Origin: Zygnema circumcarinatum SAG 698-1b
Taxonomy: Eukaryota > Plantae > Zygnematophyceae
Reading direction: 5' to 3'
Assembly (NCBI GenBank): GCA_037447605.1
Contig: CM074808.1
Location: forward strand, 2,976,001-3,040,000
Length of the DNA: 64,000 nt
Shown here: positions 1-11,767 of the stretch, piece after piece
How positions within the stretch are numbered: the stretch's first letter is position 1
How the letters are laid out: the number at the start of each line of letters is the position of its first letter
Notes under the pieces: generated by a model
What the model was told of the DNA's origin: nothing
What the model saw: only the letters and a program-made list of their open reading frames with translations
The model's database searches: none
Made by a program: the position numbers and the translations under genes

Positions 1-273
1 ATGTTGCAGCAACTACAACCACGCAAACCAAGCAGAGAAAGTCATCGGCCTGCTTGTCCATGGTCCACCCAAGACGAAAAGACCCACGAGAACTATTGCA
101 GCACTAACAGAGGACAAGTTACATACGGATTGCAAAACGACAGAGCCAGTTTTCTTGCTCTTGGGAGGCGGTGTTGAAGGTCATGGAATTGATGTTGGGG
201 CCAAGTGAAAGTCAATCAAGGATTTGCTTCTCCATGACAGCTATGTCACAACTATGTACACAATGTGCGATTT

Positions 274-1314
274 CTACCTCCGTCTCTTCAGCTCTTCCAG
301 AATGTGTTCTCCCAATCCTACAACCTTTGCAGCAAATTCGTCCAACATTTGTTTGCTCCTTTCCTGAAACACCAACTGCGCCTGTTCTGCCCTCTTGTGA
401 GACAATTCCATAACTTCCCGCAGAGCTGCACTCAACTCTGCTTGTTGCCTGTTGCGTTTCTTCCTCCCAACGGTATTTCGCAGTGTTTCATTGCTATTTG
501 GCGCCGCAGGAGGCATATCTGGCACTTGAGTATGCGCCTGCTCTCCCGGAGGAAGGACGTGCCTGTAAACCCCTAATGCACTGCCCCAGATTATTGAAGG
601 GTCTTTTTCAGACACCCATGAATCCATCGCATGAAACAGCTTCTCTGATAGCCCTGCGGGCAAATGACAGGCTCGCCGTTCGTCCGGATTCATATCCCAA
701 TAGCTTTTTGCTCCGTCTTGTTGCTTAAACTCTTTTACTTTCTTGTAATAGTTTCTCAACACATCCCACCTTCGTCTACATTCAGGTCCAGTCCTCGTCA
801 CTCCTGCGGTAGCCAGAGCTTCAGATACTTTCCTCCACCTGCTGTATTTTCTCGTTGTTTTTTCCTTTATTCCTGAATTTTCCCTCTGCCATTCTTCTTT
901 CTTTATTTCAATCAACAGCAGCGACTCGTGATCGCCCCATTTTTTCGCCTTTTTGCCTTTCTTCGCCTGGCTTTCTTCACCGCCTTCCATCTCATCATCC
1001 TGTCCTTCTGACTCTGCTCCACTCTGCGAGTTGACATCCTCTCGCAGAATGCCTGCAGAACCTACTTCCTTCTTGTTCAAACATTCGGCAGAAAACTCTT
1101 TTGATGCATCGTCTCCATCCTGCTGATGGTCGTCAGTCTCTGGTCCAGCTGATGTAGACGGATGATTCCCTACACCTCCTGGCTGAAGCTGCTTCAGCGC
1201 GGTGATGTATTTGATTAGGTCACCAGTGCTCATTTTGGTAAAATGCAAGCGCTCGCCTCGTCTATCCTCAAAAGGAGCGCATTCAGCAGTGGGGTCCGCT
1301 CCGTGCTCCATCAT
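274..1314 (-). CDS. Trihelix (Myb/SANT-like, ASR3/SH4-like) DNA-binding protein, intronless
   Basis: KKWGDHESLLLIEIKK...RWRKVSEAL...RTGPECRRRWDVLRNYYKKVKEF...SYWDMNPDERRACHLP matches the trihelix domain pattern, followed by a C-terminal coiled coil. First in-frame ATG is at 1314; the ORF track starts at GTG 1323. Confidence 0.85.
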   Translation of the reverse strand: MMEHGADPTAECAPFEDRRGERLHFTKMSTGDLIKYITALKQLQPGGVGNHPSTSAGPETDDHQQDGDDASKEFSAECLNKKEVGSAGILREDVNSQSGAESEGQDDEMEGGEESQAKKGKKAKKWGDHESLLLIEIKKEEWQRENSGIKEKTTRKYSRWRKVSEALATAGVTRTGPECRRRWDVLRNYYKKVKEFKQQDGAKSYWDMNPDERRACHLPAGLSEKLFHAMDSWVSEKDPSIIWGSALGVYRHVLPPGEQAHTQVPDMPPAAPNSNETLRNTVGRKKRNRQQAELSAALREVMELSHKRAEQAQLVFQERSKQMLDEFAAKVVGLGEHILEELKRRR

Positions 1315-1967
1315 TCCTCCCACTCCCTGTGCATGTTTCCCAATCCGTTGGTCCTCCAGCAGCGCCGCCTGGGGATACAGCAGGAGCTGCTCTTCCCTTT
1401 CAACTGAGAGCCTTCAGCTCTGCATCCTGAGGAGGCCCAGGCCCTGCACATCCCTGGAGCAGCCCCAGCCCCAGCCCGAGTCCCAGCCCCAGCCCGAGTC
1501 CCAGCCCCAGCTCCAGCTCCAACCCTAAACCTCTCCCTGCAAGCGGAGGGAAAATCACAAAAAAAGCAGCTCAGGCTGCAAGGAAACCTGTCCAAAAAAC
1601 TATCGAGTGAGTTTGCTGATGGCATTGGCGCGTATGCTGACGCAATATAACTGGCATTCTGTGAGAAATCTAGAACATTCTACAGTAGTTAAATGTACAG
1701 TACAGTAAACAGATTGTAGTATTTAACTCGAAACGGGACTGCGAGGACTCATAGATTTGCGTCGCATATGTACGGCACCACGCTGTCCGTACAGTTTTCA
1801 GAAAGGCCTGTTGGTTCATGACTCATTCGTACGCTTTCCTGTTCCTGCAGACTGAGAAGTGAGGACTGTCGTCCCTTTGAATTTTAGAGCCGGGTCTTTC
1901 TGAAATGGGAATGCAAGGAGAATGTTGGAACTTGGAAGGAGTGTTTCTGGAACGGCTGCAAACTTTT

Positions 1968-2305
1968 CACAGATCGGACCATTAGACAAACCAGTCGACT
2001 GGTTGGCAACCAGTGGTTGCGGACCGAAACAACCATTCGACTGGTTGCCAACCAGTGGCATCCACTGGTTCCAAACCAGTCGAATGGTTGCCAACCAGTG
2101 GCATCCACTGGTTGGAAACCAGTCGACTGGTTGCGAACCAGTGGCGCAGGACTGAAACAACCATTCGACTGGTTCGGAACCAGTGATCCAATGGTTGGCA
2201 ACCATTGAATTTCTGAAATTATGCCTTTTTGCAAAAATGGGTCGTATGTGTTTTTTGGTGGGTTGCCAACCGTTGACAACTAGTGTAACAAGCCTGATGC
2301 GTACA
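1968..2305. mobile_element. Left end of a CACAG-terminal TIR element, longer variant, cut by the gap
   Basis: Same left TIR and AAACTTTT flank as the 3268 element, with extra AACCAGTCGACTGGTT/AACCAGTGG units. No right TIR before the gap. Confidence 0.7.
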
Positions 2306-2315
2306 NNNNNNNNNN
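2306..2315. other. Assembly gap (10 N)
   Basis: Run of ten n characters. Confidence 1.
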
Positions 2316-3267
2316 GCTCCACTCTGCGAGTTGACATCCTCTCGCAGAATGCCTGCAGAACCTACTTCCTTCTTGTTCAAACATTCGGCAGAAAACTCTT
2401 TTGATGCATCGTCTCCATCCTGCTGATGGTCGTCAGTCTCTGGTCCAGCTGATGTAGACGGATGATTCCCTACACCTCCTGGCTGAAGCTGCTTCAGCGC
2501 GGTGATGTATTTGATTAGGTCACCAGTGCTCATTTTGGTAAAATGCAAGCGCTCGCCTCGTCTATCCTCAAAAGGAGCGCATTCAGCAGTGGGGTCCGCT
2601 CCGTGCTCCATCATTCCTCCCACTCCCTGTGCATGTTTCCCAATCCGTTGGTCCTCCAGCAGCGCCGCCTGGGGATACAGCAGGAGCTGCTCTTCCCTTT
2701 CAACTGAGAGCCTTCAGCTCTGCATCCTGAGGAGGCCCAGGCCCTGCACATCCCTGGAGCAGCCCCAGCCCCAGCCCGAGTCCCAGCCCCAGCCCGAGTC
2801 CCAGCCCCAGCTCCAGCTCCAACCCTAAACCTCTCCCTGCAAGCGGAGGGAAAATCACAAAAAAAGCAGCTCAGGCTGCAAGGAAACCTGTCCAAAAAAC
2901 TATCGAGTGAGTTTGCTGATGGCATTGGCGCGTATGCTGACGCAATATAACTGGCATTCTGTGAGAAATCTAGAACATTCTACAGTAGTTAAATGTACAG
3001 TACAGTAAACAGATTGTAGTATTTAACTCGAAACGGGACTGCGAGGACTCATAGATTTGCGTCGCATATGTACGGCACCACGCTGTCCGTACAGTTTTCA
3101 GAAAGGCCTGTTGGTTCATGACTCATTCGTACGCTTTCCTGTTCCTGCAGACTGAGAAGTGAGGACTGTCGTCCCTTTGAATTTTAGAGCCGGGTCTTTC
3201 TGAAATGGGAATGCAAGGAGAATGTTGGAACTTGGAAGGAGTGTTTCTGGAACGGCTGCAAACTTTT

Positions 3268-3464
3268 CACAGATCGGACCATTAGACAAACCAGTCGACT
3301 GGTTGGCAACCAGTGGTTGCGGACCGAAACAACCATTCGACTGGTTGCCAACCAGTGGAATGCCACTGGTTGGCAACCAGTCGACTGATTGCCAACCAGT
3401 AGACGTCCAACCATTGCCATCCAATGGTTGTCCAATGGTTGCCGATCCACTGGTCCGAACTGTG
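3268..3464. mobile_element. 197-bp MITE with CACAG...CTGTG termini and 8-bp TSD
   Basis: Left CACAGATCGGACCA versus right reverse complement CACAGTTCGGACCA (13/14). AAACTTTT flanks both sides (3260-3267, 3465-3472). Interior is built of palindromic AACCAGTCGACTGGTT-like units. Confidence 0.85.
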
Positions 3465-3761
3465 AAACTTTTAAGGAATGAAGGCTTGAATTGCAAACTT
3501 TCATTGAACTCGCGATGGCGAGGCCATCAAATTTACATGGATAAAGGCAAAATCAAGGCTTGAAGGACTGATAACAGCCCTTCTGTTACTTTAGTTTGTT
3601 TAAAATAGCGCTGCCTTCATATGCAGTTTTTAAGAATTGAAGGCATGCTATGCTGAATCCTGCATTTGCATTATCGCTGCTGCTGCTGCTGCTGCTGCTC
3701 CTTGTAGAGGCATCATCCGCCACCGGGTTGAGGAAAAGCCGGATGGTGCGTCTGGCTCGAC

Positions 3762-6700
3762 ATGCTGCTGCAGAAGACCAATCAACTGCGCCTGCTGGCT
3801 GAAGGCAGATGCCGGCCTGAAGGCATGAGTGCGGGGAGCTTGCGTGTATTTCCGGGATACGTGCCCTCGAACACGAAGACTGTGCTCACAAACACCAGTG
3901 CCCTAAAGCAACTCCGATCATCGATCTTGCCTGCACACAAGCTGTTCGGGCAACAAGGGCTGTCCACTGCTCAAGCATGTCTGGCCAGACCACATAAGTT
4001 GACAAGCTGTTCTGCGTTTGCCTATGGTCTTCAGCCAGGTCTCGTCGGAGCGATGGAAATAGGCAAGAGGATTTCCCTTTGGTGTTTATGGAGCGCATTG
4101 GAGAAGAGTTATAACCGCAAAGTCTTACGAGTGTTCCCTCATGTGTCTTTCCTCCTCCTCAATCAGGTCAGGAACGTCCAAAAAGTTGTGACTGGGAAGC
4201 CTTTTGCTGTTCTGAGCATGCTGCATAGCACAAGAGTTTTGTCACTGAGCATTTTGGCTCCTCGACCAGATTTCCATCCTCCTTTGTTTTCTTGAACCTT
4301 GAAGACTCTTAGCTTCCAAGCAGTGTTTGTCATTTCCAGGTTAGGAAAAGTTGTCCTTCTACGTAATCAAGCATCAGCTTCACATACGAGATTTCAGACA
4401 AACGATGATGAAAGCGTTCTGAGTGCCTCCACAAGGTTCTATCATAAAAACCGAATTGAATATCTTGGAAATGTGATATGTATCGCACTCTGTGTCTGTT
4501 CTTGGCCGTATTTACAGCTATCCATCGGCGCCACCATTTTTGTTATATTCAAGTGCTTCTTCTACTCGAGTCAAATTGCGTTATTGGATAAAGACATATT
4601 TAAAGCCCTTTTAGTTCCAGCGCTTCTACAAACCTCCAACAGTTTGCTCCAGCTGGTGGCCACTTTGACCCCTCGTGTGTATGTTTCAAGTGTTGTGAGA
4701 GCTGCGGAGCCGCTGTTATTCGCCATTGCCCAAAAAAAAAACTTAAGGTGGGTAATTCATACTTGATTACGCCAAAAAAAATTCTTCGTCCTCGCTCACG
4801 CAAAAAAAAGCATAAAGATACTCAAAAGAGTTGGCCAGGAGGTTAACATATTTTCAACGTTTCTTCAGGAAACAGAAATCGTTGTCAGCAGTTTAGATTG
4901 GTTGCTCTCCCATACCAGTTTTGGCGAACCTTGAGAAGTTGCATATTGATAACAGTGGGTGATATATGAAGAAAACCCCTGTGAGCTTCCTTAATTCAGA
5001 TTCGTACTTCCCTGTTCTCATCTTTGATGTCCGATTTTTGCGGTGCCGTTAAAGGACAAACACATTGATACAAGTTCTAGTTTCAGCAGTACAATCATAC
5101 AGCATCCCGACAGCCTGTATATGCCCCAAACCAGGAGCGGGTTCTGGGAATTTCTGCATGTGCATTCGTGAACTGTAGTTCCAGGGTCGACAGCAAAGCA
5201 GCTATAGTTTGGGGCGAGTATGCACCCACTATCAAATTGCATGGACTTGCGCCATCCATGGAGCACGTTAAGGTCTGCTTGAGTATATGCTTGTTCCATT
5301 CCCATCAGTGTCCTATGCAACATCAGGTCACTCCCTGTTGTGTGACGTCGTCTCCGTGGCTGCTTTTCTGAGTGGCTTGCAGTATCCAACTTCTGTCATC
5401 CATCGCTTGCATCTGGGGGGGAGCAGCTCATGCTCCACTCGACGACTACTCACTTCGCTTCTCTGCTCTGGGGGTTACTTCAGCAACAGTGACAGCATCT
5501 CTCTTCTGTGCATGGCTTCTCAAACAAAGCTTCGTCAACTTTCCGCAGGTGGGCTACAATTTGCGGTATTTGACCGATGAGAATTCCATTTGCAGTGAAG
5601 CAGTCAACGAGGCAGCTTTTCTATCATCATGTATTCACAGTTTTCATGGCTTCCAACCCACTGTCGGACAAATCTGATCCTTTACATAGGACTTTCTCCT
5701 TTTTCATTGCCACCGTGCTGAATTTTGCTTTGTAAAAACTACATCATTCCTTTGTGTCCATTCTTTTGTGCAGGTGGACGCTGCAACCGTTTATACTGTT
5801 ATGACTATTCTTTCGCTGGCTGTCGTTGCTCCCCTTGTGATGCTTTTAGAAAGGAGCCGGTTTACCCCGGCTTATGCTGCTGCCATAGACAAGGTGGGTC
5901 TCCATAGCTACTTCATTACAAAACACTGTTTTTGCCCAAAAGGAGTGGTTAATATATCGTGATAGTCGAATTCTCACATAATCATTCTGGTCTGGCTTCC
6001 TGTTCTCCTGATATCAGTCCTTGCAGTTCATTTCTATCAGTGGCTCCCTGCGAGAAGGCCGAGCGCCGATCACTGCATGTTTTTGCCAGAGCTGAGTGGC
6101 ATCCGTCGATTGATATCACTTAAGGCTTTGCTTCCAGTAACATGGGCTGCTGCGGATTGACAGGATATCCTAATGCCCCAAAGATAGGCAGAAAGTGAAA
6201 TTTTGGTCTTTATCAATTGCCGGTATATTACACAGTTGCTGCCGGGCACCAGATGGGGAGAAGGTTATCGCCGTATGCTGGGAACTTCTGCTCATATGCT
6301 TACATTCGGAACGAGGCTGATAAGTCTAGAAAAAATTAGTCCATTTTGACTTGCGCAATGAAAAAGCCTTCGCCTTGAGCATGTGCCATCCATTCACGCT
6401 GTACTTTGCTTACTCTATATAAAGTGTAGGGGTACAAAAAATAGACGCTCACTGTTACGGGAAGTACAATCACGGCTGAAACCTCAGTAACCTCATCAAC
6501 ACCTGAGCAAGGGAACAAGATACTTCCTTATCAAATTGAATGTTGGCTGTTGTTAGGTGGGCCATAAACCAACATTCAATGCCTGGCTCCTTCTCTCGGG
6601 CCTTTTTCACTCTCTCAGCACCTTTGCAGCACTGCAGGTATGAGTTCTGCCACGGAGCACTCAGCTCACAACCTCTGTAGAGATGCATTGCCTGTAATGA

Positions 6701-6959: not shown

Positions 6960-7922
6960 GGAGACCATGTAAAAGATCGCCTTGCTAAGTGTTTTCAGGA
7001 TGGGCTTCCTGTGGTTTTTTCTTAAAAAAATTCTGTCGTTGGGCTCTAGCTGGGAAATGTTGTTGGAGCGTTCGAAGAGAGCAAACTTTCAGTTCAGTTT
7101 GTAGTTTACAGTTCAATTTCCAGCAATGGCAGCAGCAACAAAAACCAAAGAAACGTGACTGTCAGCGTTTTTGTTGTACTCCGCATCCAAATGTCGGTCC
7201 AAATGTGGGAGGCAGCCAACGGGATTCACTCGTGGCTGATACAAATGCAGGTACCAATTGAGAAATGACTTTGTGGAGGCACTCACGAATCGTTCCTTTT
7301 ATTCTGACATACAATGACATGTCGGTTTATTGCATGAGGCAACATGAGAGGGGAGTTCGGGTGAGCTGGCCATCATATTGTGATCTGATGTTGCAGCCCA
7401 TAAACCTCGTGGGTTGATTTGTTTACTTTGTGAAGCAATTGTGTACGCACAAAGAAGGCGAGCCCTCCGCTTTCAACACGTGAATCGTGCATGCCTTCGT
7501 CTCAGCCCCCTCTGAAAAACAATTTGGGCGAAAACGAGAAACGCAGTCATGCGCATGCATGCGCTGAGCACATTTTTTTTTTTGCCCAAAATGAGTAACC
7601 GTCGTTAATTGAAGTGTCAACGCCTCCTTTTACGAAGACAAAAATCGGTCATGTTTAAGCGCCGGCGGGTCATGCAGAGCTGAAGCCACGAGGAGCCTTC
7701 GTCTTCCTCGCCTCCATGCACAGAGTCTCGCAATAAGCAGGAGCTCCACTGCCCGGAGAAGCAAAAGCGTTGAGAACGGCGGGGCATAGACGACATTCTG
7801 ACGGGTGCTGGGGTCCTAGAGAGGGTCAGGGATGCAAGCTCTTCACTTTAAATCCCTCCTTCCGCTGCAGCCTCTACATCGCCTCTCTGAACTTCAACTT
7901 CTCTCGCTCGCTCTCTCTTACC

Positions 7923-9341
7923 ATGGGTAGCACAGCCAGCATTACAGATTACACAGCTCCATGTGTTTATGGAAAGAGGTGTCCTAACCGCGCAACTTGC
8001 CCTTTTGCCCATTTCTCTTCCTGCAGCTATGGCTCCCGGTGCACTCTGAGAGACTGTCAATACAGCCACCCCCCCGTGTGTCCTAACCACAAAGCACAAC
8101 GCAGGGGCTGCGGCTACTGGCACCGTCCCCCCCTTTGCAAGTACGGGCGAAGCTGCAGGGATGCACAATGCCAGAGATGGCATGCTCCCTATTGTCGGTT
8201 TGGTTTGGACTGTGCTGACAGGGTTAACTGCAAATACATGCATCCTCCCAACTGTCCCGCGGGAGGAGGGTGTGAGAGGAGGGAGGGGTGCACCATGGCG
8301 CATCCGATTCTTCCGACTGCACCTCCTCCGCTCATGAGCAGAACGGCTTGTTTGCATGGAGATAACTGTTATGGGAAACATAAGTGTCCTTTTGTGCATC
8401 CTGGGGGAAATCTCATCAAGATCGGAGGTGTGAAAGCTTGAGCCATTATTACATTCGTTGTTAGATTTGGCTTCCATTTTTTAAAATATGTAGTGTTGGT
8501 ACAGTTTTGGAACTTTTATAGTCTCTTTCTTTTCTTTTATGCCATTTTCCTTCTTTCTCCTCTGTGTGTGTGAGTTGTGCGTGGACTCCATGACCCTAGT
8601 TCTTTCCATCGATGGGGATTTTTTGTTTTCTTGCAGACGCCTCTTCGTTTACCAAGTTTTTTTCCGGAAGGTGAGGGCAATGTCTTCTATTTGTTTTACT
8701 TCTAAGCGCGTTTGTGATCCAATTTCAACCAAAACTGTCATTCACTTCCTCTCTCCCGTTCAATTTCATTAATGCAGAGTCAGCTATTCTTCCATGGACG
8801 TTTACTATATCTATAACAAAACAGTGTTCGCAAGATACTTCGAAAAACTTTCGAAGGAAACAAGTACTTGCAAAAGCTCTTGTACGAACCCATCCAACTT
8901 AGCATCAAATTTTCTCCCACCCCCCAATATTGAGCGTTTAGGGCCCCACGAGGCACTTTTTTGCCATGGGACCCCTCACATCAATGTTCACGGAATCATC
9001 AACATTGGCCTCGACGTTGGCAAAATTCAAAGAGGGGGTGCGCTGTATTTTGCTGAAGATCCGCAGGTTTCCAACGGATACACCGACGCAAACCCTAAAG
9101 GTGAGAAGTCATTAATTCGAACCTGCTGGCTTGTGGCAGGGCCATGCACCGACCTGCTTGCATTTTAAGACACTCGTAGTTTAATATGTCTTTTGTTTTT
9201 GCATGTTAGGTTGGGGTTAAGGTACTCTATCTGATTTAACTGAAAATTCTAGAACCAACTGTATTCCTGTGGAAGATACAGACTTTGTGTTGTGGGAAAC
9301 ATGTGGTTTCTGGACAGAGTCTTATATGCTCGTCGGTGTGA
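7923..9341 (+). CDS. Tandem CCCH zinc-finger + PARP-like (ARTD) ADP-ribosyltransferase domain protein
   Basis: Phase-consistent GT-AG model 7923-8427, 8637-8670, 8778-9100, 9253-9341. Six C-x5-C-x4/5-C-x3-H fingers plus one degenerate finger. ART motifs VYYIYN..F.RY, LFCHGT...IINIGLD and GGALYFAEDPQVSNGY. The last exon is the least certain. Confidence 0.75.
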
Positions 9342-11767
9342 GAAGTTAGTTTCCTTAACAGGGTTCGAGTAAGTTGAGTGATTGCGGCTGTTTGACACGC
9401 TGCTGCTTCTTATTGTGAAGGATATCATACAATGTTCATTGTCCGGGTGAACATCGGACACGGAGGAACGGTGCGAGCCACATCAGCCTCACTCAGCAGC
9501 CCTTCATCATACCTGCTTTAAGCACGTGCAGATTGGAAACCCCATTCATTTCCTTCTCTTTGCAACAATTCCTTGAATAGCGCGTATTCTGTTGCAAAGT
9601 GATAAGGTGATGAAAAGCTGAATAATACACTCTTAACTCGCATGAATGGAGTGCTGTATGCCTGGGCAGACTTAAGAAAACAAGCCATATTCTGCCAGCT
9701 CATCCTCTGTGTTGGTTTCTCTGACTGCAGAGCACCGGCATTATCACGAAGAACGATAATGCTTCATGTGCCCCGCTCTTCCTGCTGTACTACAAGTAGC
9801 TCTCCTGCTCACATCTTCCATGGAATGGCAAGTTTCTTCGAAGGGAGCTAACCCTAGTCGGGACGAATGACTCTAATTGACTGCAGACTTCTCTCGTAGT
9901 CCTGACAGCAACGTAGGACGGGCTTTCAGCCCCCGGCATATGGGCCCTTCATTTGTTCCACTAGAGGAACTGAACTGAGTTGTCAATGAAAATGACTCAG
10001 AGAATGACATCAGCTTATGGGCTTGCTTGTTGCAATGTTTGGGTGAGATGCACAACGGTAAAAAAAAAAAACCAATGCAAGTTAGAACATGCATGAACAT
10101 TGGATGACTGCAAGGAGCAGATGGAACGCTTTCTTTCATTCCTGCACTCTGTCTTTCCCTACTACAACTGAATTCACAGCTATTATCTAATCCTTCGTGC
10201 TATTTAGCTGCAAGAATGAAATGGTAAAATAAGTCCCAGGCATCCTTTTTTTGCCGATGAATAGCAAATATCTACAGAGCGGACATAGAACTCCAGTTGG
10301 ATGACCTCAATACAAACACAGCTCGTGATAGAAAGTCGACTGGAGAAAGGATCTAAATTGGATAAGCTGGAAGACAACCCACGAGTAGCAACGAGGTTCC
10401 TGAAGACTAACAAACTGACATGCCTGCCTCACTTCCGTTTTGATGCCCTCTTGCCTTGTCCTTTCTTGGGAGGACCCTTTCCTCTCCGTTTCATCTTTTC
10501 CAATTTCAACACCCTCCTGCAAAATACAAGAAAATGCACCAGAATAATCGCCTCACATTTCCTTCTTTGGCAGAAAGTGAAGACCAAGTATTGCAAACCA
10601 ATCAATCACTACATTTTCCAGTGTTTGCTTTGCAGCCTAATCTGACCCTCCCCTTACATCTCTGCTCAACACCATAGAAAACAGAGATGAATAAACATGA
10701 TAACAAGAACATTGCTTCAAATCCTTCCTATGTCATTATTCCTTTCACTGAACTCTTTCATGCGCAAAATTTTCCATGACATCCCATTTCCTTTCAGCCA
10801 CCGTCATCCTTCTCCTCGATTCATTACCCCTTTTTAAACTCAGTGTCGATAGTACTTCCAGTACCCAGTTTCAAACCAACTCCATCACGTACTACTTGCT
10901 CACATTCTTCTATGTGTCTCATTTACTATAACTTTCCATGCGTATTCTGGCTGAAATCTCAGAATTCTTTGATCCACGCCTCTCCTTCACATTCACTTTT
11001 TTGCATATATGACAACTTTCGAAGTCCTAAATGGTTGACCCTACACACTTCCACCGTCCAAAAACCTAATTCTTTCCTTACAGGTTTCATCTACACCCAT
11101 AGTGCTCTGCTTCCATGTCATTAGTCCCCAACGCAAATTTCTCGCTTCACCTTTATTGTCTACATCAAACTGAGCTGCATTCATCTGCACACTTGCTAAC
11201 CTAACGTCAATGGCTGTGTTCACAGTAAAAGTCGTTAATTTGTCCTCACAAAGCCCCCCGACACGTATGGAGTGAAGGAGTGAAGACTTTTAAGGCAATA
11301 TACGCGAAAGCGGATGAATGAGAAACGCTACACTATCTGGTAGATCCTGGTTTGAATAGACAGTCAATGATAACTCCGTGTCAAGCTTGCTCTACCACTA
11401 ATTGTACAGCATTGCCTATGCCCAGTCCAGTAAAACATTATTTTGAGTAGTATATCATGCTTGCAGCTGTGCAAATCCCGCTTCTATTCCATAAATTCAA
11501 TTGCAGGACTACTGTTTGGCTGTTCAATTATTCATCGTTTTAGGTCTTCCTCCTCTCTGGAACGGTACGGCGCCAGGCCTTAGTTTATCGGTACCAACCA
11601 CATATTATACTAGGAATTATAGGAAATTAAGCCCTTACATCATGTAGCTGTCTGCATACATGTCCCCTTTCCAGCACCTGCTCAGCGAAACTCCGCAATT
11701 TTGTCTGCTCAGCCCTTGCAACCGCTTGCAACCTTAAAAGGCCTACAGGAGCTATGTTCCAAAAAAC

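Follow-up and report, generated by a model that had tools for sequence, protein, structure and literature searches.

A transcribed gene predicted to join Nab2-type CCCH zinc fingers to a partly eroded PARP-type domain in the alga Zygnema circumcarinatum

Fusions of Cys-Cys-Cys-His (CCCH) zinc fingers with PARP catalytic domains have been regarded as peculiar to animals and linked with defence against viruses. A stretch of 64,000 nucleotides (nt) from the zygnematophyte Zygnema circumcarinatum SAG 698-1b (hereafter the window; assembly GCA_037447605.1, contig CM074808.1, positions 2,976,001 to 3,040,000 of the forward strand) raises the question of whether such a fusion also exists in the green lineage and, if so, whether its enzyme half is still an enzyme. 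The preliminary description of this DNA had placed an array of Nab2-type fingers and a compact PARP-like ADP-ribosyltransferase (ART) domain within window positions 7923-9377. Comparison of this region with contigs from public sequencing runs, together with domain and homology searches, demonstrated that the gene is real, expressed and unannotated. A linker of approximately 12 residues would join six Nab2-type fingers to a PARP-homologous ART domain in a predicted product of 326 residues. The finger array is preserved throughout, and the C-terminal part of the ART domain is eroded.

The gene read from the sequence lies on the plus strand and consists of five exons separated by GT..AG introns of phases 1, 2, 1 and 0, with a start ATG at 7923, a stop TAG at 9797-9799 and a coding length of 981 nt including the stop, equivalent to 326 codons. 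The coding part of exon 1 (7923..8427) contains the whole finger array and ends in phase 1 before a donor GT at 8428. Exon 2 is a mini-exon of 34 nt (8637..8670) with AG/GT flanks, which leads from phase 1 to phase 2 and includes a run of seven T at 8657-8663. Exon 3 (8778..9100) encodes the N-terminal half of the PARP-type ART domain, exon 4 in its short in-frame form (9421..9470; (1+50) mod 3 = 0) encodes the strand (Y)HTMFIVRVNIGHGGT, and exon 5 (9731..9799) encodes the last two ART strands, STGIITKNDNASCAPLFLLYYK, followed by the TAG. The 3' untranslated region extends approximately over 9800..10043, as covered by X1 record 3 (9648-10043) and X6 record 25 (9570-10029).

The contigs used for this comparison, among them those of the runs named X1, X3 and X6, came from public runs of the same organism and were compared with positions 7000-10600 of the window. 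Of the words sampled from 7800-9900, about half were present in these runs. The runs are not recorded as RNA, and they were taken as RNA because of seven GT..AG joints and depth differences of approximately 100-fold between neighbouring genes; contig depth is approximately 2-15 over the finger-PARP gene versus approximately 60-960 for both genes beside it. The joints 8427|8637 and 8670|8778 were each found in X3 and X6 contigs, which belong to two studies, and the joints 9100|9421 and 9470|9731 were found in X3 contigs; unspliced pieces likewise occur among the contigs. The point on which the fusion had been staked beforehand, namely whether the finger exon is spliced to the ART exons, is answered by X6 record 24 (263 nt), which links the last finger, by way of the mini-exon, to the ART exon and thus spans exons 1, 2 and 3. 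This places the finger and ART exons together on a single spliced molecule. The splicing of fingers to the ART domain proposed in the preliminary description is thereby borne out at its first two joints, while its count of three junctions gives way to four junctions and five exons. Its last exon, ending at 9377, is rejected because it lies inside intron 3, which is bypassed by the joint 9100|9421; the coding sequence ends instead at the TAG of 9797-9799. Within the window, tblastn of the exon peptides detected no paralogues.

Two observations concern the 5' end of the transcript. An upstream ATG opens an open reading frame (ORF) of 32 codons at 7832-7930 in another frame, which overlaps the start codon and may act as an upstream ORF if the transcript starts upstream of 7832; X3 record 17 covers 7685-7942. 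In addition, the product begins with MGSTAS (7923-7940), which fits a loose N-myristoylation pattern. The related product described below begins with MSSFF, and the pattern is accordingly not conserved.

A regular-expression search located six complete C-x5-C-x4/5-C-x3-H fingers on the plus strand at 7962-8012, 8022-8069, 8136-8183, 8193-8243, 8253-8303 and 8349-8399, and one degenerate C-x9-C-x3-H finger at 8079-8123, which matches the six to seven fingers originally counted. Domain and homology searches were run exon by exon. On exon 1, the Nab2-type family PF14608 (zf-CCCH_2) was found in five stretches with an E value of 1.9e-11 and 44.4 bits against a cut-off of 25.8, and PF21803 (Nab2-zf4) was found on the array with an E value of 7.9e-7 and 29.2 bits against a cut-off of 20. 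The ZAP-like family zf-CCCH_10 reached only E 0.1 and 12.6 bits on the array, under its cut-off of 27. The closest solved relatives of the array in the PDB are Nab2 fingers 5-7 (5L2L and 2LHN; E about 1e-3), and the assignment to the Nab2/ZC3H14 type thus holds. Judged from these matches, the predicted array is real and far beyond chance. No relatives of the exon-1 ORF were found among full-length proteins of 123-390 residues, and no relatives of the array were found among viral contigs. By analogy with Nab2 fingers 5-7, the fingers probably bind adenosine-rich RNA.

A different ligand has nevertheless to be considered for the fingers. Because Nab2-type fingers recognise adenosines, the array could bind poly(ADP-ribose) rather than RNA, and the protein would then be a reader or writer in ADP-ribose signalling. 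A Nab2-type finger has been reported on a PARG of Entamoeba (PMC4245714), and the last finger of the array weakly resembles the PBZ finger of APLF (E 0.17-0.34). This similarity is not significant, and the RNA-binding Nab2 fingers are the best matches by far; such a role is considered highly improbable.

The assignment of the ART half depended on its relatives. Exon 3 contains the three pocket motifs of the originally described ART core, H-G-T at 8965-8973, Y-F-A at 9046-9054 and S-N-G-Y (S-x-x-Y) at 9070-9081, and their spacing equals that of the aligned PARP12 chain (Y, S +8, Y +11). The Pfam PARP family (PF00644) matched exon 3 alone weakly, with an E value of 0.0023 and 17.9 bits, below the cut-off of 26.7. 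Among 1.8 billion representative proteins, exon 3 had three matches, P0001, P0002 and P0003. P0001 (112 residues) shares 41% identity with exon 3 (E 2.8e-10) and itself matches Pfam PARP with 55.8 bits and an E value of 5.5e-15. P0003, a protist transcript product of 530 residues from EukProt, matched exon 3 with an E value of 8.5e-4 and Pfam PARP with an E value of 6.5e-12. P0002 is a repeat protein that matched only in short repeated stretches and was set aside as spurious. The domain is assigned as a homologue of the PARP catalytic domain with intact NAD+ pocket motifs on the strength of the 41%-identical P0001 and its score of 55.8 bits.

In the PDB, no PARP was matched by exon 3 alone, and the exon-5 profile (24 columns) had no match of any kind. 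The profile of three sequences (alignment A1) matched 91 PDB chains, and the 60 chains listed are PARP-family proteins. Among those listed, the top matches are PARP12 (2PQF, 1.2e-6) and then ZAP (4X52, 2.3e-5), followed by tankyrase-2, PARP3, PARP10, PARP16, PARP15 and PARP1. This order comes from a profile search, and the scores of tankyrase, PARP3, PARP10 and PARP16 lie within about two orders of magnitude of those of PARP12 and ZAP. Structure prediction reached a predicted local distance difference test score (pLDDT) of 38 both for exon 3 alone, with an alignment of three rows, and for the ART region of P0003 as a stand-in for the compact domain, which is too low for use. Searches for full-length relatives of P0001 and P0003 returned the queries themselves only, which leaves the family practically without annotation, no relatives of the N-terminal half of the ART domain were found among viral contigs, and in the atlas searches every score was under 0.9, so that these matches serve as leads only. 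A metagenome scan yielded solely distant PARPs on two contigs, L002 and L003, outside this finger-PARP family.

P0001 provided the reference against which the window gene could be read. It is encoded by an ORF on L001, a contig of 2,539 bp that stems from a different sample (Logan SRR9302961), on which a finger exon (254-743; 46% identical to exon 1 of the window gene), a mini-exon of 49 nt (812-860; equivalent to exon 2 in place and phases), an exon for the N-terminal half of the ART domain (925-1259), an exon 4 of 128 nt (1335-1462) and a last exon (1550-1627) follow one another. The two genes share the number of five exons, the intron phases 1, 2, 1 and 0, the six fingers and the N-terminal half of the ART domain. 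Identity to L001 is about equal along the gene (46% for exon 1, 40% for exon 3 and 36% for exon 5), and all Cys and His residues of the six fingers (24 zinc ligands) are invariant between the two (alignment A2); the degenerate finger at 8079-8123 has no counterpart in L001. Unlike the window gene, L001 has kept its H-Y-E triad and all of beta3-beta4-beta5, and its complete C-terminal half with Glu, ASYREFVFYENEGCLPLYLLYISN, forms part of a full-length H-Y-E PARP domain. L001 probably derives from another species, because its guanine plus cytosine (GC) content is 37% (30-42% at third codon positions, GC3) versus 47% (GC3 49-54%) for the window gene. On these alignments the window gene is placed as a diverged paralogue in a small Nab2-finger-PARP family with L001 as an intact H-Y-E member.

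Relative to L001, the catalytic half of the window gene has been altered at three levels. At the column of the catalytic Glu, which poly-ADP-ribosylation requires, the window gene has Ile (ATT, 9740-9742) where L001 has Glu and P0003 has Tyr (alignment A5), which agrees with the absence of Glu from the third triad position noted earlier. The surroundings of this column are also poorly conserved (IITKN versus EFVFY). At the level of the fold, the strand (Y)HTMFIVRVNIGHGGT of exon 4 aligns to FVVFIVRVFLGH of L001 (alignment A3), and approximately 26 residues present in L001 between FIVRV..GH (beta3) and the strand with the Glu column (beta5) are missing from the window gene. The in-frame isoform thus lacks beta4 and the acceptor-loop segment, and its six-strand PARP core is incomplete. 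At the level of splicing, reading through the donor at 9470 gives GTVRATSASLSSPSSYLL*, which aligns to GTMLCSHATSYIGGF of L001 and is closed by a TAA at 9519-9521. A longer, ancestral exon 4 with its donor at 9525 can still be recognised. The alternative extensions of exon 4 (9471..9606; donors after 9525 and 9606) both include this in-frame TAA, and both are out of phase with exon 5. Neither of the remaining frames of intron 4 contained remnants of the beta4 segment.

All three donors are in use. In X3, the donors 9470, 9525 and 9606 were each joined to the acceptor 9731, with contig depths of 4.7, 4.7 and 5.5, respectively. The donor 9470 alone keeps the full frame, and the products of 9525 and 9606 end after the third strand. 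The 'compact' domain of the preliminary description, understood as a tidy minimal enzyme, is consequently not upheld: the domain is truncated compared with L001, an upstream donor bypasses a stretch closed by a stop, and two of the three donors truncate the product. A further lesion may exist in exon 2, where X6 record 24 (depth 9) contains eight T at 8657-8663 versus seven in the window and in X3. The extra T, if real, shifts the frame ahead of the ART domain; it may be a strain difference or a homopolymer error. X6 also carries one extra T in an upstream T-run at 7572 compared with the window and X3.

These features invite the view that the gene is a decaying duplicate, still transcribed and spliced, that is becoming a pseudogene and in which the ART half, or even the protein as a whole, serves no function under selection. 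The TAA within the ancestral stretch of exon 4 with the out-of-phase form, the three competing donors, the additional T in the contig of one run and the low depth speak for such decay. It is opposed by the retention of the pocket motifs and of every one of the 24 zinc ligands, by the nearly uniform similarity of exons 1, 3 and 5 to L001 and by the proper closure of the reference frame through the frame-saving donor, and it is judged unlikely.

The reading preferred here, with an estimated probability of about 0.5, is that the product binds RNA and that its ART domain, as in ZAP, is weak or inactive. Since the finger array is fully preserved, binding of adenosine-rich RNA would likely be the working part of the protein. 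The ART half keeps the residues of its NAD+ pocket, and with its C-terminal part eroded, its catalysis may be weak or absent; the last two ART strands are retained in frame in only a share of the transcripts. The Ile in place of Glu, the loss of beta4 and the acceptor loop and the partial supply of in-frame transcripts together make a ZAP-like mode of action the most likely one. By analogy with H-Y-I PARPs, the domain could be at most a mono-ART, and quite possibly it is inactive as in ZAP; a robust RNA-directed enzyme is less likely.

Several points weigh against the proposal of a ZAP-like RNA binder. The reference frame is uninterrupted across the five phase-matched exons and none of the NAD+-contacting motifs is damaged, which is more than free decay predicts. 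PARP10 and PARP12, both of the H-Y-I type, are active mono-ARTs, and loss of the Glu alone does not amount to inactivity. In the protist protein P0003 the link between beta3 and beta5 is similarly short, and by analogy a compact domain may be viable. Furthermore, the isoform shares derive from the contig depths of a single run (X3), the extra T derives from one low-depth contig, and the ART fold of the joined domain is presumed.

The opposite view of the enzyme half, taken in the preliminary description, is that the protein is an active, compact mono-ART aimed at RNA, with fingers that attach it to A-rich or poly(A) RNA, where the H-Y-I domain mono-ADP-ribosylates bound proteins or RNA ends. 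H-Y-I PARPs are mono-ARTs, some of which modify phosphorylated RNA ends. In favour of activity, none of the three pocket motifs (H-G-T, Y-F-A and S-x-x-Y) is disrupted, the joint 9470|9731 preserves the frame, the nearest solved domains are those of PARP12 and ZAP, and in P0003, too, a short PARP domain naturally follows CCCH fingers. Activity would have to be reconciled with the absence of the beta4 and acceptor-loop segment of L001, the poor conservation around the Glu column, the truncated products of two out of three donors and the frameshift allele that X6 may carry. An active enzyme is possible, and on balance doubtful, and an RNA binder of the ZAP kind remains the preferred reading.

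The likeness to ZAP and PARP12 claimed for the architecture extends to some of its parts. Like PARP12, ZAP and TIPARP, the window gene has CCCH fingers at the N terminus and, at the C terminus, a PARP domain in which an aliphatic residue replaces the catalytic Glu, and it resembles ZAP further in that its ART domain may be non-catalytic. The animal CCCH-WWE-PARP proteins PARP12, ZAP/PARP13 and TIPARP/PARP7 form clade 3E, which has been described as confined to animals (PMC2964712). In contrast to PARP7, PARP12 and PARP13, the window gene has no WWE match in any exon (Pfam), and the mini-exon and the start of exon 3 stand between its fingers and the ART domain. In contrast to ZAP and PARP12, its fingers are of the Nab2 type, the link between the fingers and the ART domain is direct, its beta3-beta5 region is truncated, and it belongs to the green lineage. 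The CCCH and Glu-less PARP fusion and the nearest solved domains thus bear out the comparison, whereas membership of the animal clade does not follow, given the missing WWE domain and the Nab2-type fingers. It is more likely that fingers and PARP domain were assembled convergently than that the gene shares descent with the animal clade, and the simplest interpretation is that the two came together independently in the green lineage.

Other known systems are likewise matched in part. The tandem fingers share with Nab2/ZC3H14 their spacing, the C-[KR]-[FY]-G-x-x-C signature and, as given above, scores over the PF14608 and PF21803 cut-offs. Unlike Nab2/ZC3H14, the product lacks both a low-complexity region and the PWI-like domain at the N terminus; it begins 13 residues before finger 1 and ends in the ART domain, and the Pfam search of the exons revealed no further domain. 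A Nab2/ZC3H14 orthologue is ruled out by the lack of the N-terminal domain, and an RCD1/SRO protein is ruled out by the lack of a WWE or RST match in any exon (Pfam). PARP10, which is among the listed PDB matches of the profile, also combines an RNA-binding module with an H-Y-I catalytic domain; its RNA-binding fold is a different one, an RNA recognition motif (RRM), and its catalytic domain is full-length. In P0003, CCCH fingers, one of them C-x5-C-x4-C-x3-H, precede a short Glu-less PARP domain (H-Y-Y) with a short beta3-beta5 link. Unlike the window product, P0003 has a long N-terminal region and few fingers, and the similarity between the two is detectable in the N-terminal half of the ART domain only. 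P0003 is a singleton in its database, and compact finger-PARP proteins may have arisen there independently.

The PARP family surveys PMC2964712 and PMC4245714 contain no plant or algal finger-PARP fusions, and a literature search for zf-CCCH_2 together with PARP returned nothing, with no description of this architecture in the green lineage. The architecture is new for the green lineage, in which a finger-PARP gene with poly(A)-type Nab2 fingers is now at hand. The intact H-Y-E copy on L001 and the eroded H-Y-I copy of the window form a concrete pair for comparison, with which it can be asked whether RNA-directed ADP-ribosylation occurs in the plant lineage and how ART domains become non-catalytic as in ZAP. 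Of the family members, the window copy is the less informative one because its enzyme half is degenerating. A broader proposal, tentative and fairly improbable, is that streptophyte algae possess a finger-PARP family of their own that was assembled independently of ZAP/PARP12, that reads adenosines, in poly(A) RNA or in poly(ADP-ribose), and that comprises an active H-Y-E writer and, with the window gene, a ZAP-like silent partner or sensor. If this were true, RNA-guided ADP-ribosylation would exist in the green lineage, possibly directed against viruses or transposons; an antiviral or anti-transposon role is pure speculation.

Minor observations were made on the metagenome contig L002 and elsewhere in the window. 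L002, from some eukaryote, encodes at 26-3652 a large helicase, presumably ZNFX1/NFX1-like, with many Cys/His-rich repeats and an H-Y-E PARP domain at its end. Directly after this ORF, at 3734-4354, lies a stand-alone PARP of 206 residues without the Glu. In the window, a minus-strand ORF is present as a near-identical tandem duplication (274-1323 and 2219-2623; also 1202-1625 and 2502-2925) with N runs nearby, which may reflect either genuine duplication or an artefact of the assembly. Directly downstream of the finger-PARP gene, a very abundant transcript occupies 10060-10516 and beyond with a depth of about 850-960, and its splice-like loose end at 10516 was found in all four runs.

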